Shown here one piece after another: positions 1 through 58,800 of a stretch of 64,000 bases of DNA. Within the stretch, counting starts at the first letter, position 1, and every line of letters starts with the position of its first letter. Where the stretch lies: contig NIVC01000327.1 of assembly GCA_002269645.1 (NCBI GenBank), positions 372,001 through 436,000 of the forward strand, written 5' to 3'. The translations under genes and the position numbers were made by a program. Below the pieces are notes generated by a model, which saw only the letters and a list, made by a program, of their open reading frames with translations, did no database searches and was not told the origin of the DNA. Source of the stretch: Macrostomum lignano. Lineage: Eukaryota.

Positions 1-910
1 ATATATTGAGCAGTGTGTGTGTCATTTCCCATATATTGAGCAGTGTGTGTGTCATTTCCCATATATTGAGCAGTGTGTGTGTCATTTCCCATATATTGAG
101 CAGTGTGTGTGTCATTTCCCATATATTGAGCAGTGTGTGTGTCATTTCCCATATATTGAGCAGTGTGTGTGTCATTTCCCATATATTGAGCAGTGTGTGT
201 GTCATTTCCCATATATTGAGCAGTGTGTGTGTCATTTCCCATATATTGAGCAGTGTGTGTGTCATTTCCCATACATTGAGCAGTGTGTGTGTCATTTCCC
301 ATATATTGAGCAGTGTGTGTGTCATTTCCCATATATTTCCCATATATTGAGCAGTGTGTGTGTCATTTCCCATATATTGAGCAGTGTGTGTGTCATTTCC
401 CATATATTGAGCAGTGTGTGTGTCATTTCCCATATATTGAGCAGTGTGTGTGTTATTTCCCATATATTGAGCAGTGTGTGTGTGTGTCATTTCCCATATA
501 TTGAGCAGTGTGTGTGTCATTTCCCATATATTGAGCAGTGTGTGTGTCATTTCCCATATATTGAGCAGTGTGTGTGTCATTTCCCATATATTGAGCAGTG
601 TGTGTGTCATTTCCCATATATTGAGCAGTGTGTGTCATTTCCCATATATTGAGCAGTGTGTGTGTCATTTCCCATATATTGAGCAGTGTGTGTGTCATTT
701 CCCATATATTGAGCAGTGTGTGTGTTATTTCCCATATATTGAGCAGTGTGTGTGTCATTTCCCATATATTGAGCAGTGTGTGTGTCATTTCCCATATATT
801 GAGCAGTGTGTGTGTTATTTCCCATATATTGAGCAGTGTGTGTGTTATTTCCCATATATTGAGCAGTGTGTGTGTTATTTCCCATATATTGAGCAGTGTG
901 TGTGTCATTT
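1..910. repeat. 30-bp minisatellite (CATATATTGAGCAGTGTGTGTGTCATTTCC)n, truncated by the window start
   Basis: Exactly two units per 60-nt line; explains all overlapping ORFs at 6-923. Confidence 0.97.
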
Positions 911-990
911 AGCTTATATTTAGCAGTGCATAACTCCTATTTACATTATCAAATAGATGTATTTTTAACGCAATTGCAGCAACACTAAGA

Positions 991-3952
991 ATGTCCTATC
1001 AGCTATCAACATCCCCTTTAAGTCAGCTGTTCGCTGACGCCAGCACTAAAGACAAATTTGGTAAACAGATTCGCGAGGTCATAATGCAATATTGCTATCG
1101 GACTGGACTGCTACCTGACGGAGCTGATGACAAAACAATTGATGCCTCAGTGGCCAGTTTGAATGAACTTGATGAAGCCGCTAGCAGCTGGTCAAGCTTG
1201 CAGGTGCGCTAAGCTGATGTCTGCTGACTGACGCGCCACCACGACCCCCTTGACTTAGTAGTTTCTTAGAAAAGGCAGTCTTGGCATCCCTTGTTTCTCT
1301 GGTACTCTGGTTTATCCTATAATTTTTTGTTTCTTAGAAAGGCGATGTTCACTCTGCTTTTTCTTTAAAAAAGCTTTAGTTAACGTATATAGGTTTTTTA
1401 CAGAGTTTAATTTATCCAGCACCTGAAGTTTCTTAGAAAGACCAGTTAAGCCAGAATTTTTATTTTCTTAGAAAGGCCTTTTTTCGCTAGCTTAAACAGT
1501 TTCTCAGAAAAGAAAGGCCAGTATAGCCAACATTTGAAGCTTCTTAAAAACAAAAGGCCAGTAAAGCCAGCATTTGCAGTTTCGTAGAAACAAAAGGCCA
1601 GTAAAGCCAGCATTTGCAGTTTCTTAGAAACAAAAGGCCAGTATAGCTAACATTTGCAGTTTCTTAGAAACAAAAGGCCAGTATAGCTAACATTTGCAGT
1701 TTCTTAGAAAAAAAGGCCAGTATAGCTAACATTTGCAGTTTCGTAGAAACAAAAGCCAGTAAAGCCAGCATTTGCAGTTTCTTAGAAAAAAAAGGCCAGT
1801 AAAGCCAGCATTTGCAGTTTCTTAGAAAGTTTTTTTAGAAAGTTAAGTTTACCTCAAACATGATCAGCCACTACCCCCATCCGATAACCCAGGTGTGCAG
1901 TCTGGCGGAGGTGGCTCAACCCCAGAAGCCTCTATTAGGCTGCATCATATTTTATCCAACCTACTCAACTTGGGTTGGCGGCCGGCTCAGACTGGGGCTA
2001 GTGCAGTGCGACAGCAGCCAGCAGTCAAATCAGCAGCTGCTCTATAGCCTGCTCAGATCCGTGATCTGCCGGGCGTTGGATGATGAAGATTTGCAACGGA
2101 TTGAACTGCTGCATCCGGCTTCTGATGCTGCCGTATATGGACCGCTCATGCAGCTGGGGTTTGAAGATCTCACTCAGACTGAGGAGTGGCATTTTGCCAG
2201 GTGATTTCTTGAATAATAAACGCCACACCCCAGGATCAGAAACCCCACACCCTAGAATCAGAAACCCCACACCCTAGAATCAGAAACCCCACACCCTAGA
2301 ATCAGAAACCCCACACCCTAGAATCAGAAACCCCACACCCTAGAATCAGAAACCCCACACCCTAGAATCAGAAACCCCACACCCTAGAATCAGAAACCCC
2401 ACACCCCAGGATCAGAAACCCCACACCCTAGAATCAGAAACCCCACACCCTAGAATCAGAAACCCCACACCCTAGAATCAGAAACCCCACACCCTAGAAT
2501 CAGAAACCCCACACCCTAGAATCAGAAACCCCACACCCCAGAATCAGAAACACCACACCCTAGAATCAGAAACCCCACACCCCAGAATCAGAAACCCCAC
2601 ACCCTAGAATCAGAAACCCCACACCCTAGAATCAGAAATCCCACACCCTAGAATCAGAAACCCCACACCCTAGAATCAGAAACCCCACACCCTAGAATCA
2701 GAAACACCACACCCTAGAATCAGAAACCCCACACCCTAGAATCAGAAACCCCACACCCTAGAATCAGAAACCCCACACGCCAGAATCAGAAACCCCACAC
2801 CCCAGAATCAGAAACACCACACCCTAGAATCAGAAACCCCACACGCCAGAATCAGAAACCCCACGCGCCGGAATCAGAAACCCCACACCCAAGAAACCGA
2901 AATCCCACACCCTTTAGATCCCATTATCTAGCTCGAACACACAAATTTCCCCACCACGCAGGCTAGACAGGGACGGATTGCAAAACCTGGCCAACCGTCC
3001 GGCAAAGTCCGGCATAGCTGTCCGAGCTGGCGCCGAATCCGACTGCGCCGAAGTGATGAAGATGATTCATGGATTGGCCAACTTTGAAAAGCTTCAAGCT
3101 CAGGTGAGTTTGTTTTGGCGCCGAAATAAGATAGGAATGGCCCCAAAATTAAATAGGAATGGCGCCAAAATAAAATAGAAATGGCGCCAAAATAAAATAG
3201 GAATGGCGCCAAAATTAGATAATAATGGCGCCAAAATAAGATAGGAATGGCGCCAAAATTAGATAAGAATGTCGCCAAAATAAGATAGGAATGGCGCCAA
3301 AATTAGATAAGAATGTCGCCAAAATAAGATAGGAATGGCGCCAAAATTAGATAAGAATGTCGCCAAAATAAGATAGGAATGGCGCCAAAATAAGATAAGG
3401 AATGGCGCCAAAATTAGAAGTTAAAAGCGCGATTAAAAACTTTTAAACTGGCGCCAAAAGCCTCACGAGACTACTTACTACTCGTGCAGCAGTAGAAATG
3501 CAAGCATTTTCATTCTAAACTATTTTCATTCCAAGGTCCGCATCAATGAGGATCAATTGAGACGGGATATTTTTGGAGAGCGCAAATTTGCTCAATTATT
3601 CATAGCTGAGTGCTCGAATTCGGGGGAAATTCTTGGCTACGCGTTGGCATTCGACGAGTTCTGGCCCAGTGGTCGCGGAGTTTGCTTAGAAGACGTGTTC
3701 GTTCAGCCGGCGCATCGCGGCAAAGGCGTCTGTAGCGCCCTGTTCTCAGCTGTGGCTCGCGACTCGCTTTATAATCGGCGTTGCCATTTTATGAGCCTCT
3801 GTTATCTGGCTTGGAATTCCGCCGCCTTGGATGTTTACCGACACTACGGCTTTGTAGACATCACCGGCTCCGACAGCTCCAAGTCGAATGGGGCGCATTT
3901 TTTAAGATTGTCGCGCGACCAGTTCCGATCCGCGCTTGGCCAGGCTCTGTAG
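991..3952 (+). CDS. Tandem two-domain SSAT/diamine N-acetyltransferase-like GNAT protein, about 369 aa; exons 991-1203, 1893-2200, 2932-3103, 3536-3952
   Basis: GT-AG junctions join in frame (phases 0, 2, 0; 1110 nt total). Domain 2 has SAT-family motifs VRAGAESDCAEVMKMIHGLANFEK, LEDVFVQPAHRGKGV and WNSAALDVYRHYGFVDI. Domain 1 has FYPTYSTWVG and LGFEDLTQTEEWHF. An upstream exon is possible (acceptor at 978-979). Confidence 0.85.
1430..1830. repeat. About 40-bp minisatellite in intron 1 of the GNAT gene (TTCTTAGAAACAAAAGGCCAGTAAAGCCAGCATTTGCAGT)
   Basis: Tandem copies visible, degenerate at the edges. Confidence 0.85.
2220..2912. repeat. 22-bp minisatellite (ATCAGAAACCCCACACCCTAGA)n in intron 2 of the GNAT gene
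   Basis: Direct tandem copies; the reverse complement of this family is at 5820-6500. Confidence 0.95.
3113..3460. repeat. 22-bp minisatellite (TGGCGCCAAAATAAGATAGGAA)n in intron 3 of the GNAT gene
   Basis: Tandem copies between the donor at 3104 and the acceptor at 3535. Confidence 0.9.
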
Positions 3953-4339
3953 TATGATTTGGGTGCGCTGTCCTCAGTAGTCTACTGATAGTAGAAATAT
4001 TGACATTTTTGTCGAATTTCTTTTCTCTCCGCTAAAATCCTATTGACAATCAATATAGGGTCAAATTTTCCACGTTTGTGTAGAAATTTCGATTTTCATT
4101 GTTTTGGTTTTGTTTTCAAACCGGAAAAATCTGTTTATTTTGATTTGTTATTACATTATTATGCAGCTTATTACTTGTTATTTCGGCTTCTAGCAGTTTA
4201 ATACTGTCATTAACCTATATTAGTATTGTTCTGATTGTTTTCCATGTCAAGTAATTTTGTTAAGTATTGGACAGTGGCAATCAGTAATGTGCACGAGTTA
4301 ATTGTGCAGAGCTTTTATTATGGGACCTTTTGTGCACAT

Positions 4340-5220
4340 ACTAACTCTCCCTTTACCTCTACCCTCCCTCTCATCCTCTCTCTCCCTCTCCCCCTCTGCG
4401 TCTCTCCCCCTCTCCGTCTCTCCCTCTACCTCTACCCTCCCACTCATCCTCTCTCTCCCTCTCCCCCTCTCCGTCTCTCCCCCTCTCCGTCTCTCCCTCT
4501 ACCTCTCCCCCTCCCTCTTACCCCTCTCTCTGTCCCTCTCCCTCTACCCTCTCTCTCCCTCTCCCTCTACCCTCTCTCTCCTTCTCCCCTCTCCCCCTCT
4601 CCCCCTCCCTCTTACTTCTCTCTCTGTCCCTCTCCCTCTACCCTCTCTCTCCCTCTCCCTCTACCCTCTCTCTTCCTCTCCCCTCTCCCCCTCTCCCCCT
4701 CCCTCTTACTTCTCTCTCTGTCCCTCTCCCTCTACCCTCTCTCTCCCTCTCCCCTCTCCCCTCTCCCCCTCTCCCTCTACCACCCCCCTCCCTCTTACCC
4801 CTCTCTCCCTCTCCCTCTCCCTCCCTCTGCCTCTACCTCCCCCCTCCCTCTTACCTCTCTCTCCCTCTCCCTCTACCCTCTTTCTCCCTCTTCCTCTCCC
4901 TCTCCCTCCCTCTCCCTCTACCTCCCCCTCTCCCTCTTACCCCTCTCTCCCTCTCCCTCTACCCTCTTTCTCCCTCTTCCTCTCCCCCTCTCCCTCTACC
5001 TCCCCCCTCCCTCTTACCCCTCTCTCCCTCTCCCTCTACCCTCTTTCTCCCTCTTCCTCTCCCTCTCCCTCCCTCTCTCTCCCTCTCTTCTCTCCCTCTC
5101 TCTCCCTCTCTTTCTCTCCCTCTCCCTCCCTCTCTCTTCCTCTCCCTCTCCCGCTCTCCCTCTCTTCCTCACCCTCTCCCCTCTCCATCCCTCTCTCTTA
5201 CCCTTCCCCCTCTTCATCTC
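4340..5220. repeat. Low-complexity polypyrimidine (CT-rich) tract
   Basis: Almost only C and T; explains the Pro/Leu/Ser ORFs at 4235-5306. Confidence 0.95.
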
Positions 5221-5819
5221 GCAACTTTTCCTCTAGTTTTATATTAGTGATTTCAATGTTATTTAGTATTATTTATTTACAGATATCATCTAGTATTCTT
5301 TATTAGTTAGTACTCAATTATTTCTGTCAATTTCTTGAAGCAAAATACTAACAAAAAGTTTCATAAGCGCCCAGTTGTCTGCATTCAAATAAACAGACCT
5401 TATTAATATTACTATAATTATCTTATTCTGAGCCTCTTGCAAGACGGGTGCTTTGCAGTTAATTTTTATTTTATTTTTTTCCTACATTTCCCCTTTTTAA
5501 TTTTCGATCAGCTTACAATGATAATTATTTGAGTAATTACAATATAAGTCTGCCAGTCGTGTGATTTTCATATTTCTTATTGTCTTATTTAGTACAGCTA
5601 TTAGCTTCAATATTTGTCAATCCACTTAACCATTATTCATTTTATTAAATAGTTTTGTTCTTATAATAAATTTAGTCAAAGTGATTTTGGCTTTTACCTG
5701 CTAATCTTTTGCCTGTTTATGTTATATGAATCTACTGTATTCATTCAATAGGTTTTCCACACGAGTTTTATTCTAGCTAATTTCAGTTTTAATAGGTTTT
5801 AGATGATGCTTTTCTGACT

Positions 5820-6500
5820 CTCTGTGTGGGATTTCCGATTCTGGGGTGTGGTGTTTCTGATTCTGGGATGTGGGGTTTCTGATTCTGAGGTGTGGGGTTT
5901 CTGATTCTGGAGTGTGGAGTTTCTGATTCTGGGATGTGGGGTTTCTGATTCTGGGGTGTGGAGTTTCTGATTCTGGGATGTGGGGTTTCTGATTCTGAGG
6001 TGTGGGTTTTCTTATTGTGGGGTGTGGGGTTTCTGATTGTGGCGTGTGGGTTTTCTTATTGTGGGGTGTGGGGTTTCTGATTCTGGCGTGTGGGGTTTCT
6101 GATTCTGGGGTGTGGGGTTTCTGATTCTGGGGTGTGGGGTTTCTGATTCTGGGGTGTGGGTTTTCTTATTGTGGGGTGTGGGGTTTCTGATTCTGGCGTG
6201 TGGGTTTTCTTATTGTGGGGTGTGGGGTTTCTGATTCTGGCGTGTGGGGTTTCTGATTCTGGGGTGTGGGGTTTCTGATTCTGGGGTGTGGGGTTTCCTA
6301 TTCTGGGAGTGTGGGGTTTCTGATTCTGGGGTGTGGAATATCTGATTCTTTGGTGTGGGATTTCCGATTTTGGGGTGTGGGGTTTCTGATTCTGGGGTGT
6401 TGGGTTTCCGATTTTGGGGTGTGGGGTTTCTGTGTTTGGATGTGGGATTTCTATGTTTGGGTGTGGGATTTCTATGTTTGGGTGTGGGATTTCTGATTTA
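5820..6500. repeat. 22-bp minisatellite (TCTGGGGTGTGGGGTTTCTGAT)n, inverted relative to 2220-2912
   Basis: The unit is the reverse complement of the intron-2 array unit. Confidence 0.93.
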
Positions 6501-6578
6501 AGGTACTTGAAAAGTTTCTAAATTTTGGGTGTTACACTTATTGTATTCATGCAACTGCAGTCGGAGTAGCAGACCAGA

Positions 6579-7140
6579 ATGGACTCTCTGGGCGGCCTGC
6601 AAGCTCTGCAAACTCTGCTGAAGCCTCCGGGCGGCGGTCAAGATGAAGACAGCGACAGCGAGTCAGAGTCGGGCGGCCAGCAGCGCAAGAATCACTACGC
6701 CAAGCTGAACCCGGGAGACATTGGCAGCAAGCCTTCGTCTGCGCCAGCTGCTGACCAGTCAGGAGATGCCACTGCTAAACAGCCGCAGGCGAACCCCAAC
6801 GATATCTGGCATCCCGACGAAATTGGCGAAGGCGAATCCGGTGTCCTTGACGACCGTCTGGATCCTCGAGCTCAGCCGGAGTACGAGATGCACTTCCGGC
6901 AGGCTGTGTCGCCTGAGGACATGTTTCTGGGCACCGGGAATAAGACTCCGGCTACCGCCAGCTGCGAGCAGATGGTGGTGAGCAGTCTTGTAGCTAACGC
7001 TGACTGCTGAGCACAGGATAGTGCAAGCCCATACTGTACGCAGGCGCTACTACTACTAATTCTACTACTACTACTACTGCTATACTACTACTACTACTAC
7101 TGCCACTACTAAATACTACTTCTACTAAATACTACTACTA

Positions 7141-7186
<46 letters not shown>

Positions 7187-7187
7187 G

Positions 7188-7222
<35 letters not shown>

Positions 7223-7223
7223 G

Positions 7224-7308
<85 letters not shown>

Positions 7309-7312
7309 TAAA

Positions 7313-7365
<53 letters not shown>

Positions 7366-10300
7366 TCAAATTGCTAGTGAATTAGTCTGTCAAGTTTCCC
7401 AATACCAACTCACATTGACATTGCAATGCCCACAACAAGCTGGCTCATGCATCATCTATCAGTAGGATAATTATTGTTTGATCTAGGCTAAGCGGAAAAA
7501 ACAATTTTGTTTCTATGTGAAACTGCGCAAATCGCTGAACTCTCAAAGCTGAGCAGGACTCAATATATATATACGGATGTTGCCTGAGCCAAAGCAAGCA
7601 AGACATCACATCAGCTATGCATAGCCAATCGAGCAGAGCATTCCCTACCGATCGGCAATTGACTTTGCGTCAAAAGATTCACAAAGGCTGGCACTGGAGC
7701 AATGGAACAGGCAGCTACGGTAGGCTCTCAGATCAGAGCATAACCGACTCAGAGCTGGATCACGTGACTAAAGTTATGAAACGTTGGGAAGCTTTGCAAC
7801 TGACTGACACGCTGCGTTTACACGGCGCCGCTCAGAGATTGCGCTGTTTAGAGAAATCTCTAGCCGGAGATGGAATCCAGTCTTGCTTGATGTGCGGCTT
7901 GAGACTGGCTAATACGGGACATTGCTGCTTCTCTGGCTCCTTTGCTGCTTCACCTGGCACCATATGCTGTCTCTGCGGACTGCGGTTCTGTGCTGACTGT
8001 CTGTGAGTACCTGCGGCAGCTCGTGCGGTTTTCTTGAAATTATCTGATCTGACATTTACATAATCTGACATGATTTCTGACAATCTGACATGATTTCTGA
8101 CAATCTAACATGATTTCTGATAATCTGACATGATTTCTGATAATCTGACATGATCTGACATAATTATTTCTGACAATCTGACATGGTTTCTGACAATCTG
8201 ACACAGTTGCTGACAATCTGACACAGTTGCTGACAATCTGACACAGTTGCTGACAATCTGACACAGTTGTTGACAATCTGACACAGTTGCTGACAATCTG
8301 ACACAGTTGTTGACGATCTGACACAGTTGTTGACAATCTGACACAGTTGCTGACAATCTGACACAGTTGTTGACAATCTGACACAGTTGCTGACAATCTG
8401 ACACAGTTGTTGACAATCTGATACAGTTGCTGACAATCTAACACAGTTGCTGACAATCTGACACAGTTGCTGACAATCTGACACAGTTGTTGACAATCTG
8501 ATACTATTTGTGACACTGAAAGTCCGGACAGTTTGCCACAGATATATTCTCAGTCAAGCGCTACTCAACCACACATGCCAGACCGCCTAAGGAAGATTCT
8601 CCAGCATCCACTCCATCCTGGAGCTCCACAGCCAGCTCCAACGCTGCCACCGCATCACCTCTAGCCAAGAAGACCTGCCATTGCGTCAAGAAGCTGGTCT
8701 GCGAAGTTTGCCTACAAAGAAACCGGTTGCATACAGAATCGGGCAGTTGGTGGCGCAACAATTCCGGCTCGATTTCGTCGGTTGTTGATAAGAAAATCTC
8801 TGTAACCGCCTGTCCCACAGCTGTGTCGCAAATGCCCAGTGTGAGGAAGTCAGATAGATCCAAGTTGAACAGATTCGGGACAAGATCGGCGAGTGTCAGC
8901 TGCTACTGCTGTATTGGCAGCGCTCTGGCAATGCGCAGGGCTGGTCTGCCCAAACTGAAGCTAATTAGGACAGTTGTAACCGATTGAGACACGAATAAAA
9001 CTATGCTTTATCGATAATAAATTAACCAATCATTCTGCTAAGATTGCTAACGATCGACCTTTTGTTCATTTTAACCTGAGAATTGCCCTTCAGTCTTACA
9101 TGAGAATCTTCTTCAATCTCACCTGAGAATCTCCTTCAATCTCACCTGAGAATCTCCTTCCATCTCACCTGTGAATCGGCCCTCAATCTCACCTCTGAGA
9201 ATCTCCCTCAATCTCACCTGACAATCGGCCCTAAATCTCACCTCTGAGAATCACCCTCAATCTCACCTGACAATCGGCCCTAAATCTCACCTCTGAGAAT
9301 CTCCCTCAATCTCACCTGACAATCGGCCCTAAATCTCACCTCTGAGAATCTCCCTCAATCTCACCTGACAATCGGCCCTAAATCTCACCTCTGAGAATCA
9401 CCCTCAATCTCACCTGAGAATCGGCCCTCAATCTCACCCGCAATCTCACCTGAGAATCTCCTCTCAATCTCTCATGAGAATCGGCCCTCAATCTCACATG
9501 AGAATCTCCTCTCAATCTCACATGTGAATCGGCCCTCAATCTCACCTGAGAATCGCTCTTCAATCTCACCTGAGAATCGCTCTTCAACCTCACCTGAGAA
9601 TCGCTCCTCAATCTCATCTGAGAATCGCACCTCAATCTCACCTGAGAATCGCTCCTCAATCTCACCTGAGAATCGCTCTTCAACCTCACCTGAGAATCGC
9701 TCCTCAATCTCACCTGAGAATCGCACCTCAATCTCACCTGAGAATCGCTCTTCAACCTCACCTGAGAATCGCTCCTCAATCTCACCTGAGAATCGCTCTT
9801 CAACCTCACCTGAGAATCGCTCTTCAACCTCACCTGAGAATCGCTCTTCAACCTCACCTGAGAATCGCTCCTCAATCTCATCTGAGAATCGCACCTCAAT
9901 CTCACCTGAGAATCGCTCCTCAATCTCACCTGAGAATCGCTCTTCAACCTCACCTGAGAATCGCTCCTCAATCTCACCTGAGAATCGCACCTCAATCTCA
10001 CCTGAGAATCGCTCCTCAATCTCACCTGAGAATCGCTCTTCAACCTCACCTGAGAATCGCTCCTCAATCTCACCTGAGAATCGCTCTTCAACCTCACCTG
10101 AGAATCGCTCCTCAATCTCACCTGAGAATCGCCCCTCAATCTCACCTGAGAATCGCTCCTCAATCTCACCTGAGAATCGCTCTTCAACCTCACCTGAGAA
10201 TCGCTCCTCAATCTCACCTGAGAATCGCTCTTCAACCTCACCTGAGAATCGCTCTTCAACCTCACCTGAGAATCGCTCTTCAACCTCACCTGAGAATCGC

Positions 10301-11082
10301 TCTTCAACCTCACCTGAGAATCGCTCCTCAATCTCACCTGAGAATCGCTCTTCAACCTCACCTGAGAATCGCTCTTCAACCTCACCTGAGAATCGCTCTT
10401 CAACCTCACCTGAGAATCGCTCTTCAACCTCACCTGAGAATCGCTCCTCAATCTCACCTGAGAATCGCTCTTCAACCTCACCTGAGAATCGCTCTTCAAC
10501 CTCACCTGAGAATCGCTCTTCAACCTCACCTGAGAATCGCTCCTCAATCTCACCTGAGAATCGCTCTTCAACCTCACCTGAGAATCGCTCTTCAACCTCA
10601 CCTGAGAATCGCTCTTCAACCTCACCTGAGAATCGCCCCTCAATCTTACCTGGGAATCGGCCCTCAATACTACCTGAGAATCGGCCCTCAATCTCACCTG
10701 AGAATTGCCGTTCAATCCCACCTGAAGATCGGTAAAGAGAAGCCCATTAGAATCTACAACATTTTGGCTTACCAAAAATACATACTGTATTCACTACTAG
10801 TTTAGCCAAAGCAATTTCAGTAGTAACGCGCACACATCTTCAACCCCCCTCTTCTCCTCCGCGCAGATCAGCATCAAACTGCCTGGCACAAAGTCTGCTA
10901 ACGAATTAAACTTGGACATTCGCGAGAAATTTCTTGACCTTCGTTCGGCTCGTTACCGGCTGGGTTTGCACCTGCCAAATGCGGTGGACCCAGATTCGGG
11001 TAGCGCCAAGTTCGACTGCGACTCTGCCAGCCTCACTATCATTCTCAACAATAAGCGGGAATATGACTTTGCTAATTTTTAG
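6579..11082 (+). CDS. DNAAF6: Dynein axonemal assembly factor 6 (PIH1D3/twister), 204 aa; exons 6579-6977 and 10867-11082
   Basis: Exon 1 has LQALQTLL, NDIWHPDEI, PEYEMHFRQAVSPEDMFLG. Exon 2 reads ISIKLPG...LDLRSARYRLGLHLP...KREYDFANF*. These match the PIH1D3 pattern as I recall it. Phase-0 GTGAG donor at 6978, polypyrimidine-CAG acceptor at 10866, AATAAA at 11193-11198. Confidence 0.93.
7045..7368. repeat. (TAC)n trinucleotide microsatellite
   Basis: Direct observation. Confidence 0.97.
7617..8987 (+). CDS. Rabphilin-3A/Noc2 (RPH3AL)-like Rab-binding zinc-finger protein nested in the DNAAF6 intron; exon 7617-8002 and a second exon ending at 8987 (acceptor unresolved; in-frame candidates 8582, 8624, 8636)
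   Basis: PTDRQLTLRQKIHKGW, GDGIQSCLMCG, CCLCGLRFCADC and LVCEVCLQRNRLHTESGSWW parallel the rabphilin/Noc2 motifs PNDRQLALRAKLQTGW, GNGLSQCLLCG and LCKIC...SGAWF. GTGAGT donor at 8003; AATAAA at 8994-8999. Confidence 0.78.
8040..8512. repeat. 20-bp minisatellite (CTGACACAGTTGCTGACAAT)n in the intron of the nested gene
   Basis: Tandem copies; explains the minus-strand ORFs at 8040-8516. Confidence 0.93.
9075..10732. repeat. 24-bp minisatellite (CTCACCTGAGAATCGCTCCTCAAT)n in the DNAAF6 intron
   Basis: 8-aa periodicity (SPENRSSI) in the ORF track; inverted copy at 13260-13755. Confidence 0.96.
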
Positions 11083-12300: not shown

Positions 12301-13024
12301 TCCTTTCACACTATATTGGCACTAGTTAGTGACTAGATCAATGATTATAGAATCGCAGCTAACCTCTCACTAATGCTGAATCAGACACTTCGGTCTGGTT
12401 AAATAATTAATGGCTAGCATTTAGCCAGAAATCTTTCACCTGGCCTGGTGCTAGATAAGCTACCTATTTGAAGAGAATTAAATGAAGCGACATCTTGCTA
12501 ATCTCAGCGGGAGGTCCTGCATTTGTCTCTGGAATTTCAACCACTCACTCGCTCAGATTCTGTTATAGTCAAAGAGTGACAATCAATAATTGAACAGGTA
12601 TATTTAGTGTGAAGTTGAAAGTTTTTTTTGCGTCAGGTAATTAGTTATAAATATTGCATTGCTCGCAAATTTTTTCGTCCTGCATCCAACTGCTGTGCAG
12701 CTTCATCATTCTTGCCTCACTTGAGGGTGAATTTTAAGTGGAAGCTGGATCACTTGATGACGTGACACGGGAAACCCTGACGGATTGTTCAAAGGTAAAA
12801 ACCTGATCCTTACTCCTACACGCCAGTATATTGCACAGATCATCTTCTCCTGTCTTTGCATTGTGTGCTCAGTCATGGATACTTCAAACAAGAACTTGGG
12901 TTGCCAAGTCTTAAGTTTGTTTTTTCAGTTAGGGCTACTTTATATGAATAATATTTTACTGAATCTGTCATGATTTCGGCTTGGTCAGACCCAAGTCTTA
13001 GCATTCCAGATATTTGGATTGAGG

Positions 13025-13755
13025 TGGGCGATTCTCAAGGAAATTTAGGGGCGATTCTCAAGGAGATTTGGGGGCGATTCTCAAGGAGATTTGGGGGCGA
13101 TTCTCAAGGAGATTTGGGGGCGATCCTCAAGGAGATTTGGGGGCGATCCTCAAGGAGATTTGGGGGCGATTCTCAAGGAGATTTGGGGGCGATTCTCAAG
13201 GAGATTTGGGGGCGATTCTCAAGGAGATTCGGGGGCGATTTTCAAGAAGACTCAGGGCGATTTTAAGGTGAGATTAAGGGGTGATTCTCAGGTGAGATTG
13301 AAGAACGATTCTAAGGTGAGATTGTGGGCCGATTCTCAGGTGAAATTGAGGGGCGGTTCTCAGGTGAGATTGAGGGGCGGTTCTCAGCAGGTGAGATTGA
13401 GGGGCGATTCTCAGGTGAGATTGAGGGCCGATTCTCAGGTGCGATTGAGGGGCGGTTCTCAGGTGAGATTGAAGAACGATTCTAAGGTGAGATTGTGGGC
13501 CGATTCTCAGGTGAGATTGAGGAGCGATTCTCAGGTGAGATTGTGGGGCGATTCTCAGGTGAGATTGAGGGGCGGTTCTCAGGTGAGATTGAGGGGCGGT
13601 TCTCAGGTGAGATTGAGAGGCGGTTCTCAGGTGATATTGAGGGGCAGTTCTCAGGTGAGATTGAGGGGCGGTTCTCAGATGAGATTGTGGGCCGATTCTC
13701 AGGTGAGATTGAGGGGCGATTCTCAGGTGAGATTGTGGGCCGATTCTCAGGTGAG
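13025..13755. repeat. 23-bp and 24-bp minisatellites, reverse complement of the 9075-10732 family
   Basis: CTCAGGTGAGATTGAGGGGCGGTT units at 13260-13755, preceded by a CTCAAGGAGATTTGGGGGCGATT derivative. Confidence 0.92.
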
Positions 13756-17271: not shown

Positions 17272-18570
17272 TCACCACATCCCCGTACCACTGCGGCGGA
17301 GCCCGACTCCTCGCACTCGCTCGAATCGCCGTCGGTGCTCCTTGATGCGGCGGCAGCTCTTCAGCCGCCTCACGCGCACCCAGTCGCCGACCTTGATCAC
17401 CGGCGGTGGCCTACTGGCCGAGTTGAGCTTGCTGAAGACTCGCTGCTGCTTCTGCCTGATGCTGCCAGCCAGGTTGTGCTGCGATGGCGTCCTTGGCTGC
17501 AGTGCAGTCAGCGGAGTGCTGATTTTCCGGCTCGTCATCAGCTCCGCCGGTGACACCCCCGTCAGTGCGTGCGGGGTGGCCCGGTATGACCACAGCAGCG
17601 CCCTCACCGCGTCCTTGAAACCGTAGCCGTCCTGCAGGTGCGTCTTCAGGCCGTCTTTCAGAAACCGGTTGAAGCGCTCGACATGCAGCGTTGCCTTGCG
17701 GGTGGTAGTGCGGCGACTGGCGGTGCTGGAGGAAATCTTTGAAGTCACCGGACATGAACTGCGGCTCGCCGTCCGTGTTGATGCTCTTTGGGAGTTCCCA
17801 GCGGCTGAACCACGTCGTCAGGGCGTCGATCACGTCAGCTGTGGTCACTGTCGACATGCAGGCTGCTTCTGGCCACTTCGAATGCAGGTCGTACAGCACC
17901 AGAATGAAGCGACATGAGTTCGGCGCCGAATGCAGCTCCCCGAAGATGTCGAGCTGAAGCTCCTCCCAAGGTCGCGTCGGCCACTTTGTCGGAGTCAGCA
18001 CCGTTTTGGATGGCTTGAAGTTCTTCTTGCTGAGCAGGCAGGCCTCGCAGTGCCGCACGAACTCCTCGATTTGACTTTCGATCTGCGGCCACCAGACCGA
18101 GTCCCGGCAGTGCTGCTTCATTCTGCTCACTCCGAGGTGCCCAAAGTGCGCCAGCTGCAGCGTCTTCTCTCTCAACGACGCGGGGATCACCGCGCGCAAC
18201 CCATTCGCCAGGCACTTGCCTTCGTTCCAGACTGTGAGCTGCTCCTTGATCTGCCAGAACGGCTGCAGCTCCGGCCTCAACTGCTGGATGGAACTCGGCC
18301 AGCCCTCCAGCGTCATCTCGATCGCCTGGCTGATCACCGGGTCCTGTAAAGATGCCTCAGCCAGTTCGCTTGGGCTCACGATCTGCAGCGCGCCAGACAG
18401 CAGGACGGCGTTCACTTGGAGCTCCGCCGGGTCCTCCTCGCCGCTGTCGTTGCGGGTGCCGTGTCGCGACAAAAAGTCCGGAACGGTGTTCTTTTTCCCC
18501 GGAACGTGGCAGACCTGGAAGTCATACGCGAGCAGGCCGTCGGCCCACCGGTGCAGTCTCAATGGCCGGT
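17272..18570 (-). pseudogene. Gypsy pol remnant: RNase H C-terminus plus integrase, frameshifted near 17700-17750
   Basis: The integrase core is split between ORFs 17411-18631 and 17272-17748. Confidence 0.85.
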
Positions 18571-18940
18571 GGCCGCTGCCCTCGCTGCCAAAACCTGTGG
18601 CGCTCCGCCACCACGTTGGTCTTGCCACCAAACTGCTCCTTTAGCAGCTTCACGGTCTCGTCGAATCCCAGCGGTGGCTGTTCACCATCCGAATTCTGAG
18701 ATCGCGGTGGCTGCATCGCTGCGAACATCCGCTGTCCTTCAGCACCCAGGCAGTGCAGAAGCAGGGCTCGCTTTCTCGCGTCTGGTAGAGTGTCGAAGCC
18801 CGCCGCCATTAAGTATTATAAGCATTAAGCCCGCCGTCAAACAGGCTCTTCCACTCATTCCACGGCCTCGTTGGCGGTCCCGGTTGAGGCAGGAATTGCT
18901 CTGGTGGCGAGATGTTGATTCTTGGCACCTCCGATGTGCT
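18571..18940 (-). pseudogene. Gypsy gag N-terminal remnant, frameshifted near 18810
   Basis: PPEQFLPQPGPPTRPWNEWKSLF, then in another frame DARKRALLLHCLGAEGQRMF...KTNVVAERHRF. Confidence 0.8.
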
Positions 18941-22195: not shown

Positions 22196-22314
22196 CTTAC
22201 GTACCCTCCCGACCATTTACCCTCCCTACAAAAATAAAAAAGCAGCTTAATTTAAGATAAAAAATCCAGGATTTCTCCCATTCCCCTCTCCCTCTGTTCC
22301 TCAAACTCGTGCAG

Positions 22315-27785
<5,471 letters not shown>

Positions 27786-30563: not shown

Positions 30564-32152
30564 TAGCGCCAATTAAGCGTCGCAGGTGAGATTCTAGCGT
30601 CAATCAAGCGTCGCAGGTGAGATTCTAGCGCCAATCAAGCGTCGCAGGTGAGATTCTAGCGCCAATCAAGCGTCGCAGGTGAGATTCTAGCGCCAATCAA
30701 GCGTCGCAGGTGAGATTCTAGCGTCAATCAAGCGTCGCAGGTGAGATTCTAGCGCCAATCAAGCGTCGCAGGTGAGATTCTAGCGCCAATCAAGCGTCGC
30801 AGGTGAGATTCTAGCGCCAATCAAGCGTCGCAGGTGAGATTCTAGCGCCAATCAAGCGTCGCAGGTGAGATTCTAGCGTCAATCAAGCGTCGCAGGTAAG
30901 ATTCTAGCGTCAATTAAGCGCCGCAGGTGAGATTCTAGCGTCAATTAAGCGTCGCAGGTGAGATTCTAGCGTCAATCAAGCGTCGCAGGTAAGATTCTAG
31001 CGTCAATTAAGCGCCGCATGTGAGATTCTAGCGTCAATCAAGCGTCGCAGGTGAGATTCTAGCGTCAATCAAGCGTCGCAGGTGAGATTCTAGCGCCAAT
31101 CAAGCGTCGCAGGTGAGATTCTAGCGCCAATCAAGCGTCGCAGGTGAGATTCTAGCGCCAATAAAGCGTCGCAGGTGAGATTCTAGCGTCAATCAAGCGT
31201 CGCAGGTGAGATTCTAGCGCCAATCAAGCGTCGCAGGTGAGATTCTAGCGCCAATCAAGCGTCGCAGGTGAGATTCTAGCGCCAATCAAGCGTCGCAGGT
31301 GAGATTCTAGCGTCAGTTAAGCGCCGCAGGTGAGATTCTAGCGTCAATTAAGCGCCGCAGGTGAGATTCTAGCGTCAATTAAGCGCCGCAGGTGAGATTC
31401 TAGCGTCAATTAAGCGCCGCAGGTGAGATTCTAGCGTCAATTAAGCGCCGCATGTGAGATTCTAGCGTCAATTAAGCGCCGCATGTGAGATTCTAGCGTC
31501 AATTAAGCGTCGCAGGTGAGATTCTAGCTCGGCAGGTGAGATTCTAGCTCCGCAGGTGAGATTCTAGCTCGGCAGGTGAGATTCTAGCTCGGCAGGTGAG
31601 ATTCTAGCTCGGCAGGTGAGATTCTAGCTCGGCAGGTGAGATTCTAGCTGGGCAGGTGAGATTCTAGCTCCGCAGGTGAGATTCTAGCGTCAATTAAGCG
31701 CCGCATGTGAGATTCTAGCGTCAATTAAGCGCCGCATGTGAGATTCTAGCGTCAATTAAGCGTCGCAGGTGAGATTCTAGCTCGGCAGGTGAGATTCTAG
31801 CTCCGCAGGTGAGATTCTAGCTCGGCAGGTGAGATTCTAGCTCGGCAGGTGAGATTCTAGCTCGGCAGGTGAGATTCTAGCTCGGCAGGTGAGATTCTAG
31901 CTCGGCAGGTGAGATTCTAGCTCGGCAGGTGAGATTCTAGCTCGGCAGGTGAGATTCTAACTCCGCTGGTGAGATTCTAGCTCGGCAGGTGAGATTCTAG
32001 CGCCAATTAAGCGCCGCAGGTGAGATTCTAGCGTCAATTAAGCGCCGCAGGTGAGATTCTAGCGTCAATTAAGCGCCGCAGGTGAGATTCTAGCGTCAAT
32101 TAAGCGCCGCATGTGAGATTCTAGCGTCAATTAAGCACCACAAGTGAGATAT
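30564..32152. repeat. 31-bp minisatellite (CAGGTGAGATTCTAGCGCCAATCAAGCGTCG)n with embedded blocks of a 20-bp derivative
   Basis: Direct observation. Confidence 0.96.
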
Positions 32153-36084: not shown

Positions 36085-36089
36085 GCCGA

Positions 36090-37926
36090 AGGTGAGATTC
36101 TAGCGCCAATTAAACGCCGCAGGTGAGATTCTAGCACCAATTAAACGCCGCAGGTGAGATTCTAGCGCCAATTAAACGCCGCAGGTGAGATTCTAGCACC
36201 AATTAAACGCCGCAGGTGAGATTCTAGCACCAATTAAACGCCGCAGGTGAGATTCTAGCACCAATTAAACGCCGCAGGTGAGATTCTAGCACCAATTAAA
36301 CGCCGCAGGTGAGATTCTAGCGCCAATTAAACGCCGCAGGTGAGATTCTAGCACCAATTAAACGCCGCAGGTGAGATTCTAGCACCAATTAAACGCCGCA
36401 GGTGAGATTCTAGCGCCAATTAAACGCCGCAGGTGAGATTCTAGCGCCAATTAAACGCCGCAGGTGAGATTCTAGCGCCAATTAAACGCCGCAGGTGAGA
36501 TTCTAGCGCCAATTAAACGCCGCAGGTGACATTCTAGCGCCAATTAAACGCCGCAGGTGAGATTCTAGCACCAATTAAACGCCGCAGGTGACATTCTAGC
36601 GCCAATTAAACGCCGCAGGTGAGATTCTAGCGCTGCAGGTGAGATTCTAGCACCAATTAAACGCCGCAGGTGAGATTCTAGCGCCAATTAAACGCCGCAG
36701 GTGAGATTCTAGCACCAATTAAACGCCGCAGGTGACATTCTAGCGCCAATTAAACGCCGCAGGTGAGATTCTAGCGCTGCAGGTGAGATTCTAGCACCAA
36801 TTAAACGCCGCAGATGAGATTCTAGCACCAATTAAACGCCGCAGGTGAGATTCTAGCGCCAATTAAACGCCGCAGGTGAGATTCTAGCACCAATTAAACG
36901 CCGCAGGTGACATTCTAGCGCCAATTAAACGCCGCAGGTGAGATTCTAGCACCAATTAAACGCCGCAGATGAGATTCTAGCACCAATTAAACGCCGCAGG
37001 TGAGATTCTAGCACCAATTAAACGCCGCAGGTGAGATTCTAGCGCCAATTAAACGCCGCAGGTGAGATTCTAGCACCAATTAAACGCCGCAGGTGAGATT
37101 CTAGCACCAATTAAACGCCGCAGGTGAGATTCTAGCGCCAATTAAACGCCGCAGGTGAGATTCTAGCGCCAATTAAACGCCGCAGGTGAGATTCTAGCGC
37201 CAATTAAACGCCGCAGGTGAGATTCTAGCGCCAATTAAACGCCGCAGGTGACATTCTAGCGCCAATTAAACGCCGCAGGTGAGATTCTAGCACCAATTAA
37301 ACGCCGCAGGTGACATTCTAGCGCCAATTAAACGCCGCAGGTGAGATTCTAGCGCTGCAGGTGAGATTCTAGCACCAATTAAACGCCGCAGGTGAGATTC
37401 TAGCGCCAATTAAACGCCGCAGGTGAGATTCTAGCACCAATTAAACGCCGCAGGTGACATTCTAGCGCCAATTAAACGCCGCAGGTGAGATTCTAGCGCT
37501 GCAGGTGAGATTCTAGCACCAATTAAACGCCGCAGATGAGATTCTAGCACCAATTAAACGCCGCAGGTGAGATTCTAGCGCCAATTAAACGCCGCAGGTG
37601 AGATTCTAGCGCCAATTAAACGCCGCAGGTGAGATTCTAGCGTCAATTAAACGCCGCAGGTGAGACTCTAGCGCCAATTAAGCGCCGCAGGTGAGATTCT
37701 AGCGCCAATTAAACGCCGCAGGTGAGATTCTAGCGCCAATTAAACGCCGCAGGTGAGATTCTAGCGCCAATTAAACGCCGCAGGTGAGATTCTAGCGCCA
37801 ATTAAACGCCGCAGGTGAGATTCTAGCGCCAATTAAACGCCGCAGATGAGATTCTAGCGCCAATTAAGCGCCGCAGGTGAGACTCTAGCGCCAATTAAGC
37901 GCCGCAGGTGAGATTCTAGGTGAGAT
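36090..37926. repeat. 31-bp minisatellite (CAGGTGAGATTCTAGCGCCAATTAAACGCCG)n, same family and orientation as 30564-32152
   Basis: Direct observation. Confidence 0.96.
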
Positions 37927-45330: not shown

Positions 45331-45792
45331 TGCCCCTCCAGTCAGCTACACTATTCAATTTCAAAGTAAGCACTTCCTGATTTAGCATGTACGCGTTAGC
45401 CAATGAGGCACCCAGAAAAAACAAAAAGTGCAGTTATGATCGTGTTATATTTTACAGATACAAACACAGGACCTTCCGGCTCGGTGCAGCAGCTGTAAAT
45501 CAACGCCACCGGTTGCTACCTCATCGAGGCCTCCGGAGCCTGGGGCGGCAACAACACCAGCAGCGGCAAGCTGGGGGGCAAAGGCGCTCTGGCCAAGGGT
45601 AACTTCAGCCTGACTCTGGGCACAACTCTGAGCATCCTTGTTGGTCAGGCGGGCGCAGAGCCCAGTCACCAGTACGGCGGTGCCGGCGGAGGCGGCGGCA
45701 GCTTTGTATTTATCAACAGCGTCTGGACCCAACTCCTGGTAGCTGCTGGTGGCGGCGGCGGAGCGACATGGTCTTTTGACGGTGAGCTGTGA

Positions 45793-46177
45793 CAGGTTAC
45801 CGTCTGCAGGATGCTGGGACCCATTGAGAGTGATGCTACATAGGTTACCGTCTGCAGGATGCTGGGACCCATTGAGAGTGATGCTACATAGGTTACCGTC
45901 TGCAGGATGCTGGGACCCATTGGGAGTGATGCTACATAGGTTACCGTCTGCAGGATGCTGGGACCCATTGAGAGTGATGCTACATAGGTTACCGTCTGCA
46001 GGATGCTGCAGGGACCCATTGAGAGTGATGCTACATAGGTTACCGTCTGCAGGATGCTGGGACCCATTGGGAGTGATGCTACATAGGTTACCGTCTGCAG
46101 GATGCTGGGACCCATTGGGAGTGATGCTACATAGGTTACCGTCTGCAGGATGCTGGGACCCATTGAGAGTGCTACAT
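45793..46177. repeat. 48-bp minisatellite in intron 3 of copy 1
   Basis: 16-aa periodicity (LHRLPSAGCWDPLRVM). Confidence 0.93.
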
Positions 46178-46897
46178 GTTTGCTCTCACCCCAGGTCTTC
46201 CCGGCCAGTCCGGCGTGAACGGCACCGACGCTACCGAATCGAGTTCCGGCAGGCAGAGCTTCGATCACGGCGGTGCCAACGGTGCTGCTGGCTACAACCT
46301 TCCTCAGGAAGTGCAGAGCTCCGCTACTCACGGCGGCTGCGGCTCGGGCTGGAATGGCAAGGCTGACAATGTCAGACGAGGCAACAATGACGGCGAACGA
46401 GGCGGATGGCTGTTCGACAGCACCGAAGGCGCTGGCGGAGCTGGTGGCACCTATAGCGGCGGCGGAGGCGGAAGCGGAAGCGGCACGGGCACCGGAGGCT
46501 TCGGCGGAGGCGGTGGAGGCGGCTGTGGCGGCAGCAGCAATAAGTGCAACGGTGCCTGCTCCGGCCAGTGCAAATCCTCTGGCGGAGGCGGAGGCGGCTA
46601 CAGCGGCGGCGGCTCCGGAGTCAACGAAGATCAAGCCGGTGGCGGCGGCGGCTCCTACTGCTCCGGTGCCGGCTGCTCCAGCGTCACAGGCGGCTCGGTG
46701 AACTCGGCGAATCCGCACGGTCTGGTGACGGTGACCGGGCCTGGCGGCGGCACCTGCTGAGGGCTGAGCACTCGGGAGTTGAGCAAGTTGAGCACTCGGG
46801 ATCTACGGAAAATAACGGAATGACGAGAGGATGTTTATGAGTTTAAACTGAAAACTTTAAACAATATAGTCGGCCACTAGCAGTAGTGAGTAGAATC

Positions 46898-55840: not shown

Positions 55841-58800
55841 TCAGCAGGTGCCGCCGCCAGGCCCGGTCACCGTCACCAGACCGTGCGGATTCGCCGAGTT
55901 CACCGAGCCGCCTGTGACGCTGGAGCAGCCGACACCGGAGCAGTAGGAGCCGCCGCCGCCACCAGCTTGGTCGCGGTTGACGCCGGCTCCGCCGCCGCTG
56001 TAGCCGCCACCGCCTCCGCCAGAGGATTTGCACTGGCCTTCGCAGGCGCTGCCGCACTTGACGGCACCGGCGCCGCAGCCACCGCCTCCGCCGCCGCCGA
56101 AGCCTCCGGTGCCCGTGCCGCTTTTTCCTCCAGCTCCGCCAGCGCCTTCGGTGCTGTCGAATAGCCAGCCGCCTCGTTCACCGTCGTAGCTGCTCAGTCT
56201 GGGGTTGGCGGCCTTGCCACTCCAGCCCGAGCCGCAGCCGCCGTGCCTGGCCAGGTTCTCGACATCACTCGGCTGGTTGTAGCCAGCAGCTCCGTTGGCA
56301 CCGCCGTGGTCGAAGCTTTGCCTGCCCGAAGTCGATGGGGTTGCGCCGGTGCCGTTCACGCCCGACTGGCCGGGTACACCTGAACGAAACAGCAGTGTTT
56401 GTAGAGAAGTCAGTCAGTGAGTCAGTGAGTCAGTGAGTCAGTGAGTCAGTCAGTGAGTCAGTGAGTCAGTGAGTCAGTGAGTCAGTCAGTGAGTCAGTGA
56501 GTCAGTCAGTGAGTCAGTAAGTCAGTGAGTCAGTCAGTGAGTCAGTAAGTCAGTGAGTCAGTGAGTCAGTGAGTCAGTGAGTCAGTGAGTGAGTCAGTGA
56601 GTCAGTGAGTGAGTCAGTGAGTCAGTGAGTGAGTCAGTGAGTCAGTGAGTGAGTCAGTGAGTCAGTGAGTGAGTCAGTGAGTCAGTGAGTGAGTCAGTGA
56701 GTCAGTGAGTGAGTCAGTGAGTCAGTGAGTGAGTCAGTGAGTCAGTGAGTCAGTCAGTGAGTCAGTAAGTCAGTGAGTCAGTCAGTGAGTCAGTAAGTCA
56801 GTGAGTCAGTGAGTCAGTGAGTCAGTGAGTCAGTGAGTGAGTCAGTGAGTCAGTGAGTGAGTCAGTGAGTCAGTGAGTGAGTCAGTGAGTCAGTGAGTGA
56901 GTCAGTGAGTCAGTGAGTGAGTCAGTGAGTCAGTGAGTGAGTCAGTGAGTCAGTGAGTCAGTGAGTCAGTGAGTCAGTGAGTCAGTGAGTCAGTCAGTCA
57001 GTCAGTCAGTCAGTCAGTCAGTCAGTCAGTCAGTCAGTCAGTCAGTCAGTCAGTCAGTCAGTCAGTCAGTCAGTCAGTCAGTCAGTCAGTCAGTCAGTCA
57101 GTCAGTCAGTCAGTCAGTCAGTCAGTCAGTCAGTCAGTCAGTCAGTCAGTCAGTCAGTCAGTCAGTCAGTCAGTCAGTCAGTCAGTCAGTCAGTCAGTCA
57201 GCTCACCATCAGAGGACTGTGAAGCTCCGCCGCCGCCGCCAGCAGCTACCAGGAGCTGCTTCGGGCTGCTGTTGATGAACACGAAGCTGCCGCCGCCTCC
57301 GCCGGCACCGCCAGCCTTGTCATTGGGCTCTGCGCCCGCCTGGCCAACAAGGATGCTCAGAGTTGTGTCCAGAGTCAGGCTGAAGTTGCCCTTGGCCAAG
57401 GCGCCTTTGCCGCCCAGCGGGCCGCTGCTGGTGCTGTTGCCGCCCCAGGCTCCGGAGGCCTCGATGAGGTAGCAGCCAGTGGCGTTGATTGACAGCTGCT
57501 GCACCGAGCCGGAAGGTCCTGTGCTCGAGTCTGGTAGTTTGGAGTAAAATTAAAACTCATGTATAAAAGTAGGGCCCATGGTCGATATATAGGATTAATT
57601 GTTTTAAGACAGTGGTTGTAAAGTACGAGTATTTTATAGAGAATCCAGCTTCATGGGTGCGGGCCTGATGAGAGTGGAAAGGATAGGGAATGGAAGAAGA
57701 GAGATGAGAGAAGAGAGGAGAGATGAGAGAAGAGAGGAGAGATGAGAGAAGAGAGGAGAGATGAGAGGAGAGAAGAGAGAGGGAAGAGAAGAGAGAGTTT
57801 GAGATGAGAGAGGTTGAGAAGAGAGAAGGAGAGAAGAGAAAGGTTGAGATGAGAGATGTTGAGAAGAGAGGAGAGAAGAGAGAGGTTGAGATGAGAGAGG
57901 GGAGATAAGAAGAGAGAAGAGCTAGGGGAGAGAAGAGAGAGGGGAGAGAAGAGAGAGGGGAGAGAAGAGAAAGGTTGAGATGAGAGATGTTGAGAAGAGA
58001 GGAGAGAAGAGAGAGGTTGAGATGAGAGAGGGGAGATAAGAAGAGAGAAGAGCTAGGGGAGAGAAGAGAGAGGGGAGAGAAGAGATAGGTTGAGAAGAGA
58101 GAGGTTGAGATGAGAGAGGTTGAGATGAGAGAGGTTGAGGTGAGAGAAGAGAGGGGAGAAGAGTAGATTTAGAGAAGAGGAGAGACGGGACACGAGACTG
58201 AGAGAAGAGGGACCCCGCTGCTTAAAGACAAAGTTAAAAAAAACTTTCTGAAGGCCATTTTAATCTACAATATACGACCAAACACAGCTAAAGAGGTCTT
58301 GAAGACTTTTAACAGCTTTTTTTGCCAACGACCTTAATTTAGAAAGTCTGGACATTTTTGGTTGTTCGAATGAGTGCTTTTACTTACTTCGAAATACATG
58401 TACGGACGTCGGCTTGAACCGGCGTTGCCCAACCTGGCTGTCGAAGTCCTCTCGCCGCCACACGCGCATGCCGGAGTCGCCCAGCTCGGCTCCCAGTCGC
58501 CTGTCCACGCGAGTCTCCTGAGCCTGCTGGCCCAGAGAATCGTGGTGCACCAACAGCTGCTGACAGAAGCCGGTCGATGGAACGAAGGCGGCCGCCAGAC
58601 AGTCACGCGACCGACAGACGGCGAGGCACTCGGAGTCGGAGCGCAAGCCGGTGGAGTTGAAAAGCTCGCTGCTCGAGGAGGCGTTGAGCTGGACCGGGGC
58701 CTCCGTGAGCTCGAATGGCGGCACGTCGGCTGCGAGCAAGTTGGGGAGATCGGATGGGAGTTGCGTGACAGGATGCAAAAGTGCAAGCTGTACTTCTGGT

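Follow-up and report, generated by a model that had tools for sequence, protein, structure and literature searches.

A predicted Rab-effector gene of rabphilin/Noc2 type on the host strand within the only coding intron of DNAAF6 of a flatworm, Macrostomum lignano

Can the intron of one gene house, in the same orientation, a second gene with start and end signals of its own, and by what route would two mRNAs then be made from the one strand? This question is raised by a locus of the flatworm Macrostomum lignano in a stretch of 64,000 nucleotides (contig NIVC01000327.1, positions 372,001 to 436,000 of the forward strand; hereafter the window, to which all positions refer unless another contig is named). 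Here the DNAAF6/PIH1D3 gene has a single coding intron of 3.9 kb, in which an unannotated, two-exon open reading frame (ORF) of 263 amino acids runs on the same (+) strand and resembles the Rab effectors rabphilin and Noc2; together with its signals the unit occupies 7564-9021, within the limits of the intron at 6978-10866. We favor, with a probability of roughly 0.6, the view that this is a real host/nested pair, i.e., a complete sense-strand gene for a Rab-binding protein that sits, with its own promoter, in an ancient DNAAF6 intron. Two other contigs of assembly GCA_002269645.1, NIVC01001833.1 (L001) and NIVC01000100.1 (L002), served for comparison; they are mutually identical in their aligned stretches and are referred to below as the other copy.

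The DNAAF6 host gene and its intron

6579..6977, + strand: DNAAF6/PIH1D3 coding exon 1 (ATG at 6579, residues 1-133, ending in phase 0, donor GTGAGC at 6978)
6978..10866, + strand: the single DNAAF6 coding intron (3,889 nucleotides, phase 0, 63% tandem repeat)
7047-7365: (CTA)n repeat in the intron
8062-8515: 20-nucleotide minisatellite in the intron
9074-10732: 24/48-nucleotide minisatellite in the intron
10867..11082, + strand: DNAAF6 coding exon 2 (residues 134-204, completing PIH1_CS, stop at 11080-11082)

The two coding exons of the host gene encode a protein of 204 amino acids that matches Pfam PIH1_CS with 52.1 bits (cut-off 23.3) over residues 98-193. Since this domain crosses the junction between residues 133 and 134, the assertion in an earlier note on this DNA that DNAAF6 requires the exon at 10867 holds; without exon 2 the frame closes 10 codons into the intron, and the protein would be cut in the middle of its CS domain. 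The product shares 43-51% identity with DNAAF6/PIH1D3 of mollusc, annelid, fluke and vertebrate origin, the best matches being named DNAAF6, and it is 98% identical to GenBank BOX15_Mlig019242g1 (204 amino acids), for which the same two coding exons are annotated over 4.5 kb on two contigs, matching the proposed joining of 6977 to 10867. Exon 2 is preceded by CCTCCGCGCAG, an acceptor in which CAG follows a strong pyrimidine tract. For DNAAF6 itself, CTGCAG (6553-6558) was considered as a trans-splice site and was rejected as unconserved, the other copy having CTGCAA at this position.

The intron falls at CEQMV/I (the slash marks the splice junction), and the same codon boundary and phase are found in oyster (CEDMV/VKIKLPG) and Opisthorchis (CEFLV/ARIRLPG), in which the flanking regions are split by further introns, whereas they are uninterrupted in M. 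lignano. Judged by this shared position, the intron is an ancient one, and the only coding intron that the M. lignano lineage has retained. In M. lignano DNAAF6, ancestral introns of the coding region near residues 101/102 and 162/163 have been lost, and the sole one kept is the one that houses the nested gene.

Tandem repeat makes up 53% of the window, and more than half of the unique remainder of the DNAAF6 intron is taken up by the two pieces of the nested, same-strand ORF. The 5′ splice-site consensus 9-mer CAGGTGAGA occurs 141 times in the window where ~1 occurrence is expected, always within minisatellites (the arrays lie at 9074-10732 on the - strand, and at 13017-13755, 30564-32150 and 36085-37919 on the + strand); its copies in the DNAAF6 intron are antisense, and an inverted array of the same 24-nucleotide unit lies just 3′ of DNAAF6 exon 2. 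No snoRNA, other RNA family or spliced-leader gene was found in the intron or the window.

The nested gene and its predicted protein

7564..7573, + strand: TATA-like element TATATATATA, 53 nucleotides 5′ of the nested ATG, a candidate core promoter that is kept in L001 and L002
7617..8002, + strand: nested coding exon 1, encoding the N-terminal DRQLxLRxKxxxGW motif, Rab-binding helix 1 and C1-C6 of the zinc-finger cysteines (phase-2 donor GTGAGT at 8003)
8003..8581, + strand: intron of the nested gene, 579 nucleotides in the window, mostly 20-nucleotide minisatellite
8582..8987, + strand: nested coding exon 2, with a Ser/Ala-rich long loop, C7-C8 (CEVC), SGSWW and a tail of 75 amino acids without a recognised domain (TGA at 8985-8987)
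8994-8999 and 9016-9021, + strand: two AATAAA hexamers 3′ of the nested stop

A search of PDB sequences with the nested protein returned one match, the Rab3A-binding domain of rabphilin-3A (1ZBD_B, E 9.3e-8). HMMER, run exhaustively over 1.84 billion representative proteins, gave 71 matches at E<1e-3, several of which span residues 6-9 to 185-212, with Noc2 proteins ranking among the best; those that bear names are Noc2, 'rabphilin 3A-like (without C2 domains)', rabphilin-3A and Doc2-named rabphilins, and they come from fish, coelacanth, hagfish, tunicates, a hemichordate and a nematode. The eight zinc-binding cysteines, in CLMC, CCLC, CADC and CEVC, are conserved in both copies of the locus, and SGSWW replaces the SGAWF of the family. 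The AlphaFold model of the protein is of moderate quality (mean predicted local distance difference test score, pLDDT, 59; core 80-86) and has helices at residues 44-80 and 170-189. When this model was compared with the PDB using Foldseek, 1ZBD_B ranked first (E 5e-7, target-normalised template-modelling score 0.62), followed by the melanophilin-Rab27B complex 2ZET_C. As far as sequence and modelled fold can tell, the nested gene is confirmed as one for a rabphilin/Noc2-type Rab-binding domain, and the reading given in the earlier note, of a spliced Rab-effector zinc-finger gene on the same strand as its host, is upheld.

Like vertebrate Noc2/RPH3AL, the flatworm protein is short and consists of a Rab-binding domain only, with the DRQLxLRxKxxxGW motif, the helix, an eight-cysteine FYVE-type zinc finger and an SGAWF-type motif; it differs from the vertebrate protein in a loop of ~40 residues between cysteines 6 and 7 and in an unrelated tail, and the identity is ~25-30%. 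The layout of the Rab-binding domain is also common to the nested protein and rabphilin-3A (1ZBD), but rabphilin has two C2 domains. Stop-to-stop ORFs 3′ of the nested gene, scanned by eye and with no dedicated C2 search, showed no C2-like exons, so that the architecture looks Noc2-like. Vertebrate Rph3al has been traced to a duplication and fission of Rph3a within the vertebrates, from which the linked Rph3al-Doc2b pair resulted, and a single rabphilin has been ascribed to invertebrates (PMC2823689, Craxton). Because that fission is placed inside the vertebrates, the flatworm gene is more likely to be a convergent truncation than an orthologue, and its Noc2-like architecture probably has an origin independent of vertebrate Noc2. 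A tunicate rabphilin gene has no intron position in common with the nested gene, which is indecisive as to retroposition or DNA duplication because the lineage loses introns anyway. In literature searches, nothing specific turned up on RPH3AL, rabphilin or PIH1D3 in Macrostomum or on the DNAAF6 locus tag.

The limits of the nested coding sequence can be drawn with differing firmness. Homology to the family begins at residue 8-9 with FPTDRQLTLRQKIHKGW (CPxDRQLALRAKLxTGW in the family), which establishes ATG 7617 as the initiation codon; directly 5′ of this ATG the other copy has a 2-bp indel, which shows that the sequence before it is non-coding. GTGAGT at 8003 is the sole strong donor in the nested ORF and the sole one that matches GT[G/A]AG, the donor consensus of M. 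lignano (PMC8629364). On the acceptor side, CAG/ACC at 8582 is the nearest site in frame with 8003 and gives the 263-amino-acid protein, and an exon of UniProt A0A1I8FJP1 also begins there; acceptors at 8624 and 8636 are likewise in frame with this donor, so that 8582 stands as the candidate acceptor. An acceptor at 8542 was discarded, as a 2-bp indel in the other copy would break the frame, and so was a donor GTGAGG at 8841 that would link nested exon 2, with the frame preserved, to DNAAF6 exon 2: the other copy has GTGAAG there, and use of this donor would fuse half a CS domain. In the minisatellite of the nested intron, which extends over 1,370 nucleotides in L001 (11195-12564), the 20-nucleotide unit holds a branch-point-like CTGAC followed by CACAG.

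As to signals outside the coding sequence, the element at 7564 is the one match to TATAWAW on the + strand within the DNAAF6 span (22 such matches lie on that strand of the whole window), and AATAAA occurs on the + strand of the span only at 8994 and 9016 and, for the host, at 11193. The poly(A) signal that the earlier note had placed behind the nested stop, the AATAAA at 8994-8999, is present in the window but not in the other copy, which reads GAACTGA there; the hexamer at 9016 is the conserved one.

Maintenance of the nested gene

In its unique DNA the window shares 92-96% identity (~5% divergence) with L001 and L002, and on this comparison the window is another copy of the locus, either a duplicate in a partly duplicated genome or one from a very close relative. 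On both contigs the nested ORF is intact and in the same place, and the same order of parts on two other contigs at ~5% divergence makes misassembly, a doubt raised by the earlier note, unlikely.

Between the window and L001, 28 of the 792 nested coding nucleotides are substituted, as are 62 of 922 unique non-coding nucleotides. No indel falls in the 792 coding nucleotides, while there are 11 in the 922 non-coding ones and 5 in the 362 nucleotides directly around the exons; the Poisson probability of zero indels in the nested ORF is 8e-5, or 0.03 when only indels outside simple-sequence contexts are counted. The 20 amino-acid differences between the copies miss all 32 family-conserved positions (P ~0.06), and both splice sites (GTGAGT and CAG) are kept, as are the TATA-like element and AATAAA 9016.

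Against these signs of a maintained and functional gene weigh several observations. Pfam FYVE_2 (PF02318), by which the earlier note had proposed to check the nested protein, is indeed the only family match, but the score of the 263-amino-acid model (16.8 bits) stays below the curated 27.2 bits; it rises to 24.7 bits when the acceptor at 8636 is used and to 26.3 bits once the loop, whose length costs score, is taken out. The best pyrimidine tract in the region precedes acceptor 8554, which was nevertheless rejected since it is out of frame with 8003, the only good donor, and joining the two would give a truncated product of 140 amino acids. For the nested gene, the ratio of nonsynonymous to synonymous substitution rates (dN/dS) comes to 1.00 (bootstrap 95% interval 0.52-2.86), with no difference between the three frames, whereas that of the whole DNAAF6 coding sequence between the copies is 0.075 (0.013-0.20). 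The block 7365-8990 (L001 10558-12970) is ~3.3% diverged in coding and non-coding parts alike, compared with ~11% at DNAAF6 synonymous sites and ~8-17% in the outer non-coding DNA; as the block is uniformly low, its low divergence alone is no proof of protein constraint, and the pattern may reflect recent gene conversion between the copies or could reflect constraint at the nucleotide level. Lastly, the transcript-based Mlig_3_7 GenBank annotation on these contigs has the SEP-domain gene, an acetyltransferase and DNAAF6 but no entry for the nested gene, no GenBank protein matches it, and its only database entries are UniProt A0A1I8FJP1, A0A1I8FH18 and A0A1I8FAU4, from the older ML2 assembly.

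Such observations would be expected if the ORF were a decaying or silent relic, i.e., a recently inactivated or never-expressed partial rabphilin copy that by chance is intact in both copies of the locus. A dN/dS of ~1 in every frame, absence from the transcript-based annotation, the unconserved first AATAAA (8994) and a sub-threshold Pfam score that speaks of strong divergence all agree with decay, and because ~29% of simulated sets of 28 substitutions stay stop-free, the lack of stops in the nested ORF is uninformative. Decay does not, however, sit well with zero indels in 792 nucleotides next to non-coding DNA that has many, with zinc ligands and family motifs that are all kept in both copies, or with splice signals and a TATA-like element that are conserved together with the second AATAAA; furthermore, that homology to vertebrate and tunicate proteins can still be recognised implies that selection acted over the long term, until the recent past. 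We consider a relic somewhat unlikely, and we read the comparison of the copies as suggesting a nested protein under weak constraint, in which the frame and the family residues would be protected while changes elsewhere would come at about the synonymous rate. No Noc2-like ORF was found in the DNAAF6 loci of Opisthorchis and oyster, which points to a nesting that is specific to this lineage.

The three UniProt models bring up another possibility, namely that the nested exons are alternative exons of DNAAF6, for each model stitches together DNAAF6 exon 1, nested pieces that are out of frame or partial, and DNAAF6 exon 2. Yet the models read nested exon 1 in a homology-free frame and drop parts of PIH1_CS or shift its frame, the conserved frame being that of rabphilin, which has a start and a stop of its own; and splicing of DNAAF6 exon 1 to 7615 would lose the frame, as the earlier note had stated, and reach a stop after 15 further codons. 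Alternative exons are scarcely credible on this evidence, and the same holds for an assembly artefact, against which stands the identical order of the parts on three diverged contigs. We regard the three chimeric models, from their sequences, as prediction artefacts. Exact-sequence look-ups of the chimeras and of the unspliced ORFs found no contigs. A further entry, A0A1I8FJN2, is a frame-shifted DNAAF6 model, and the chimeric and frame-shifted models appear to stem from the error-prone older assembly.

Routes to two mRNAs and comparable loci

For a real host/nested pair, the following course of events is proposed. The nested gene would be transcribed from its own promoter, with the conserved TATA-like element ~50 nucleotides 5′ of its ATG; its minisatellite-filled intron would be spliced from 8003 to 8582, and its mRNA would end at its own poly(A) signal at 9016 or, in the window copy, also at 8994. 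The DNAAF6 mRNA would arise by removal of the entire 3.9-kb intron as a unit. Going by its family, the nested protein would bind GTP-bound Rab3/Rab27-type GTPases on secretory vesicles.

A different route would do without a separate promoter for the nested gene. In an intron-embedded cistron, the nested mRNA would be cut from the primary transcript of DNAAF6 or of a longer operon; a spliced leader would be added at an acceptor near the nested ATG, and cleavage and polyadenylation would take place at 9016, so that a transcript would yield either DNAAF6 or the effector. Trans-splicing acts on 30-39% of the genes of M. lignano, and operons comprise ~15% of them (PMC8629364, PMC5730564); with a trans-spliced share of 30% (PMC8629364), release of the nested mRNA in this way is possible in principle. 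A CAG, moreover, stands 2 nucleotides 5′ of the nested ATG; the SEP-domain and acetyltransferase genes upstream and DNAAF6 are all on the same strand; the SEP-to-PIH1D3 adjacency recurs in Opisthorchis; and, with repeats subtracted, only ~320 nucleotides separate the nested ATG from the donor of DNAAF6 exon 1. The acceptor that the earlier note had placed at 7615 does end in this CAG, but it is a bare one (CATCAG, preceded by GCAAGCAAGACATCA) without a pyrimidine tract, and it does not fit the trans-splice acceptor motif YTNCAG, which is found at 44% of M. lignano sites and is not obligatory (PMC8629364). In the other copy a 2-bp indel lies six bases 5′ of the 7615 cut. According to the passage of PMC8629364 that cites Conrad et al., an acceptor with a cis donor upstream is expected to be cis-spliced, which here would produce an out-of-frame chimera; and a 35-nucleotide spliced leader placed at 7615 would bring an AUG that is out of frame and opens an upstream ORF of 16 codons overlapping the true start. 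The conserved TATA-like element also provides a simpler route. We judge an embedded cistron unlikely. Decidedly unlikely is an 'operon within an intron', in which the effector mRNA would be carved from the transcript of DNAAF6, or of a SEP-acetyltransferase-DNAAF6 operon, by trans-splicing and internal polyadenylation, and in which this one ancient intron would have been kept, when all the others were lost, because it houses the cistron.

The genes upstream of DNAAF6 are of some interest in themselves. In M. lignano as in Opisthorchis felineus, PIH1D3/DNAAF6 has a same-strand SEP-domain (p47-like) gene upstream of it, and in M. lignano a GNAT acetyltransferase gene lies between the two; the SEP-DNAAF6 stretch covers 934-11082 in the window, 1199-14506 in L001, 1-14476 in L002 and 1-25670 in L003. 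This gene order suggests a microsynteny that is conserved across distant flatworms and may be an operon, and the same-strand neighbours together with the SEP-to-PIH1D3 adjacency hint at co-transcription. Elsewhere in the window the following features were recognised:

17414-18640, - strand: integrase fragment (Integrase_H2C2 and rve) of a long terminal repeat (LTR) retroelement
22251-22634 and 24940-25884, + strand: nuclear hormone receptor exons (zf-C4, 93 bits, and the start of the ligand-binding domain), set apart by long GA-rich and 14-nucleotide minisatellites
45499-46757, + strand, and 55844-57549, - strand: two inverted copies, ~9 kb apart, of a gene with an ALK/LTK-type glycine-rich domain (PF12810)
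63616-63999, - strand: C-terminal end of a bicarbonate-transporter (HCO3_cotransp) gene at the window edge

How unusual a sense-strand nested gene is can be judged from mammals. More than a tenth of mouse and human genes are nested, and the two orientations are broadly similar in number (PMC11694760), so that the premise of the earlier note that nested genes are mostly antisense was overstated. For the H13/Mcts2 pair, premature polyadenylation of the host transcript has been linked to transcription of the gene nested in it (PMC11694760; PMC13309782). It is possible that the flatworm nested gene affects DNAAF6 output through transcriptional interference or premature polyadenylation. That its internal poly(A) site would compete with full-length DNAAF6, an interplay like that at H13/Mcts2, and might act as a switch between ciliated and secretory cell programmes, as the earlier note proposed, is purely an inference for the flatworm. 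H13/Mcts2 and the flatworm pair are alike in that a complete gene lies within a host intron; Mcts2, however, is an imprinted retrogene whose case was built on transcript and methylation data, whereas the flatworm pair is known from sequence. Mammals also lack spliced-leader trans-splicing, which M. lignano has.

Another same-strand arrangement is that of the cholinergic locus, conserved across animals, in which VAChT/unc-17 lies inside the first intron of ChAT/cha-1; the two genes have a common 5′ exon and promoter and serve the same cells and pathway. Both loci thus have a same-strand gene nested in an intron, but the flatworm pair is without a common exon, a joining of the two genes being out of frame, and its functions (dynein pre-assembly and vesicle exocytosis) are unrelated. 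With the trans-spliced operons of M. lignano the locus has in common same-strand neighbours, short repeat-corrected distances and a CAG just 5′ of an ATG (PMC8629364); in operons, however, one gene ends before the next starts, whereas here the 'downstream' gene lies inside an intron of the upstream one and lacks the acceptor motif.

Because nested genes of either orientation are common, current understanding is not overturned, and the locus is a fairly ordinary nested gene of modest interest, chiefly as a test case and an annotation fix. For the gene set of M. lignano it would add a new, unannotated protein-coding gene and flag three chimeric UniProt models as wrong. For the rabphilin family it would mean that a C2-less, Noc2-like rabphilin arose a second time, probably independently, outside the vertebrates. 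As its unique sequence comes to 1.5 kb and transgenesis works in this animal, the locus would offer a compact setting in which a sense-strand nested gene with its own poly(A) signal can be studied beside its host in a species that uses trans-splicing and operons.

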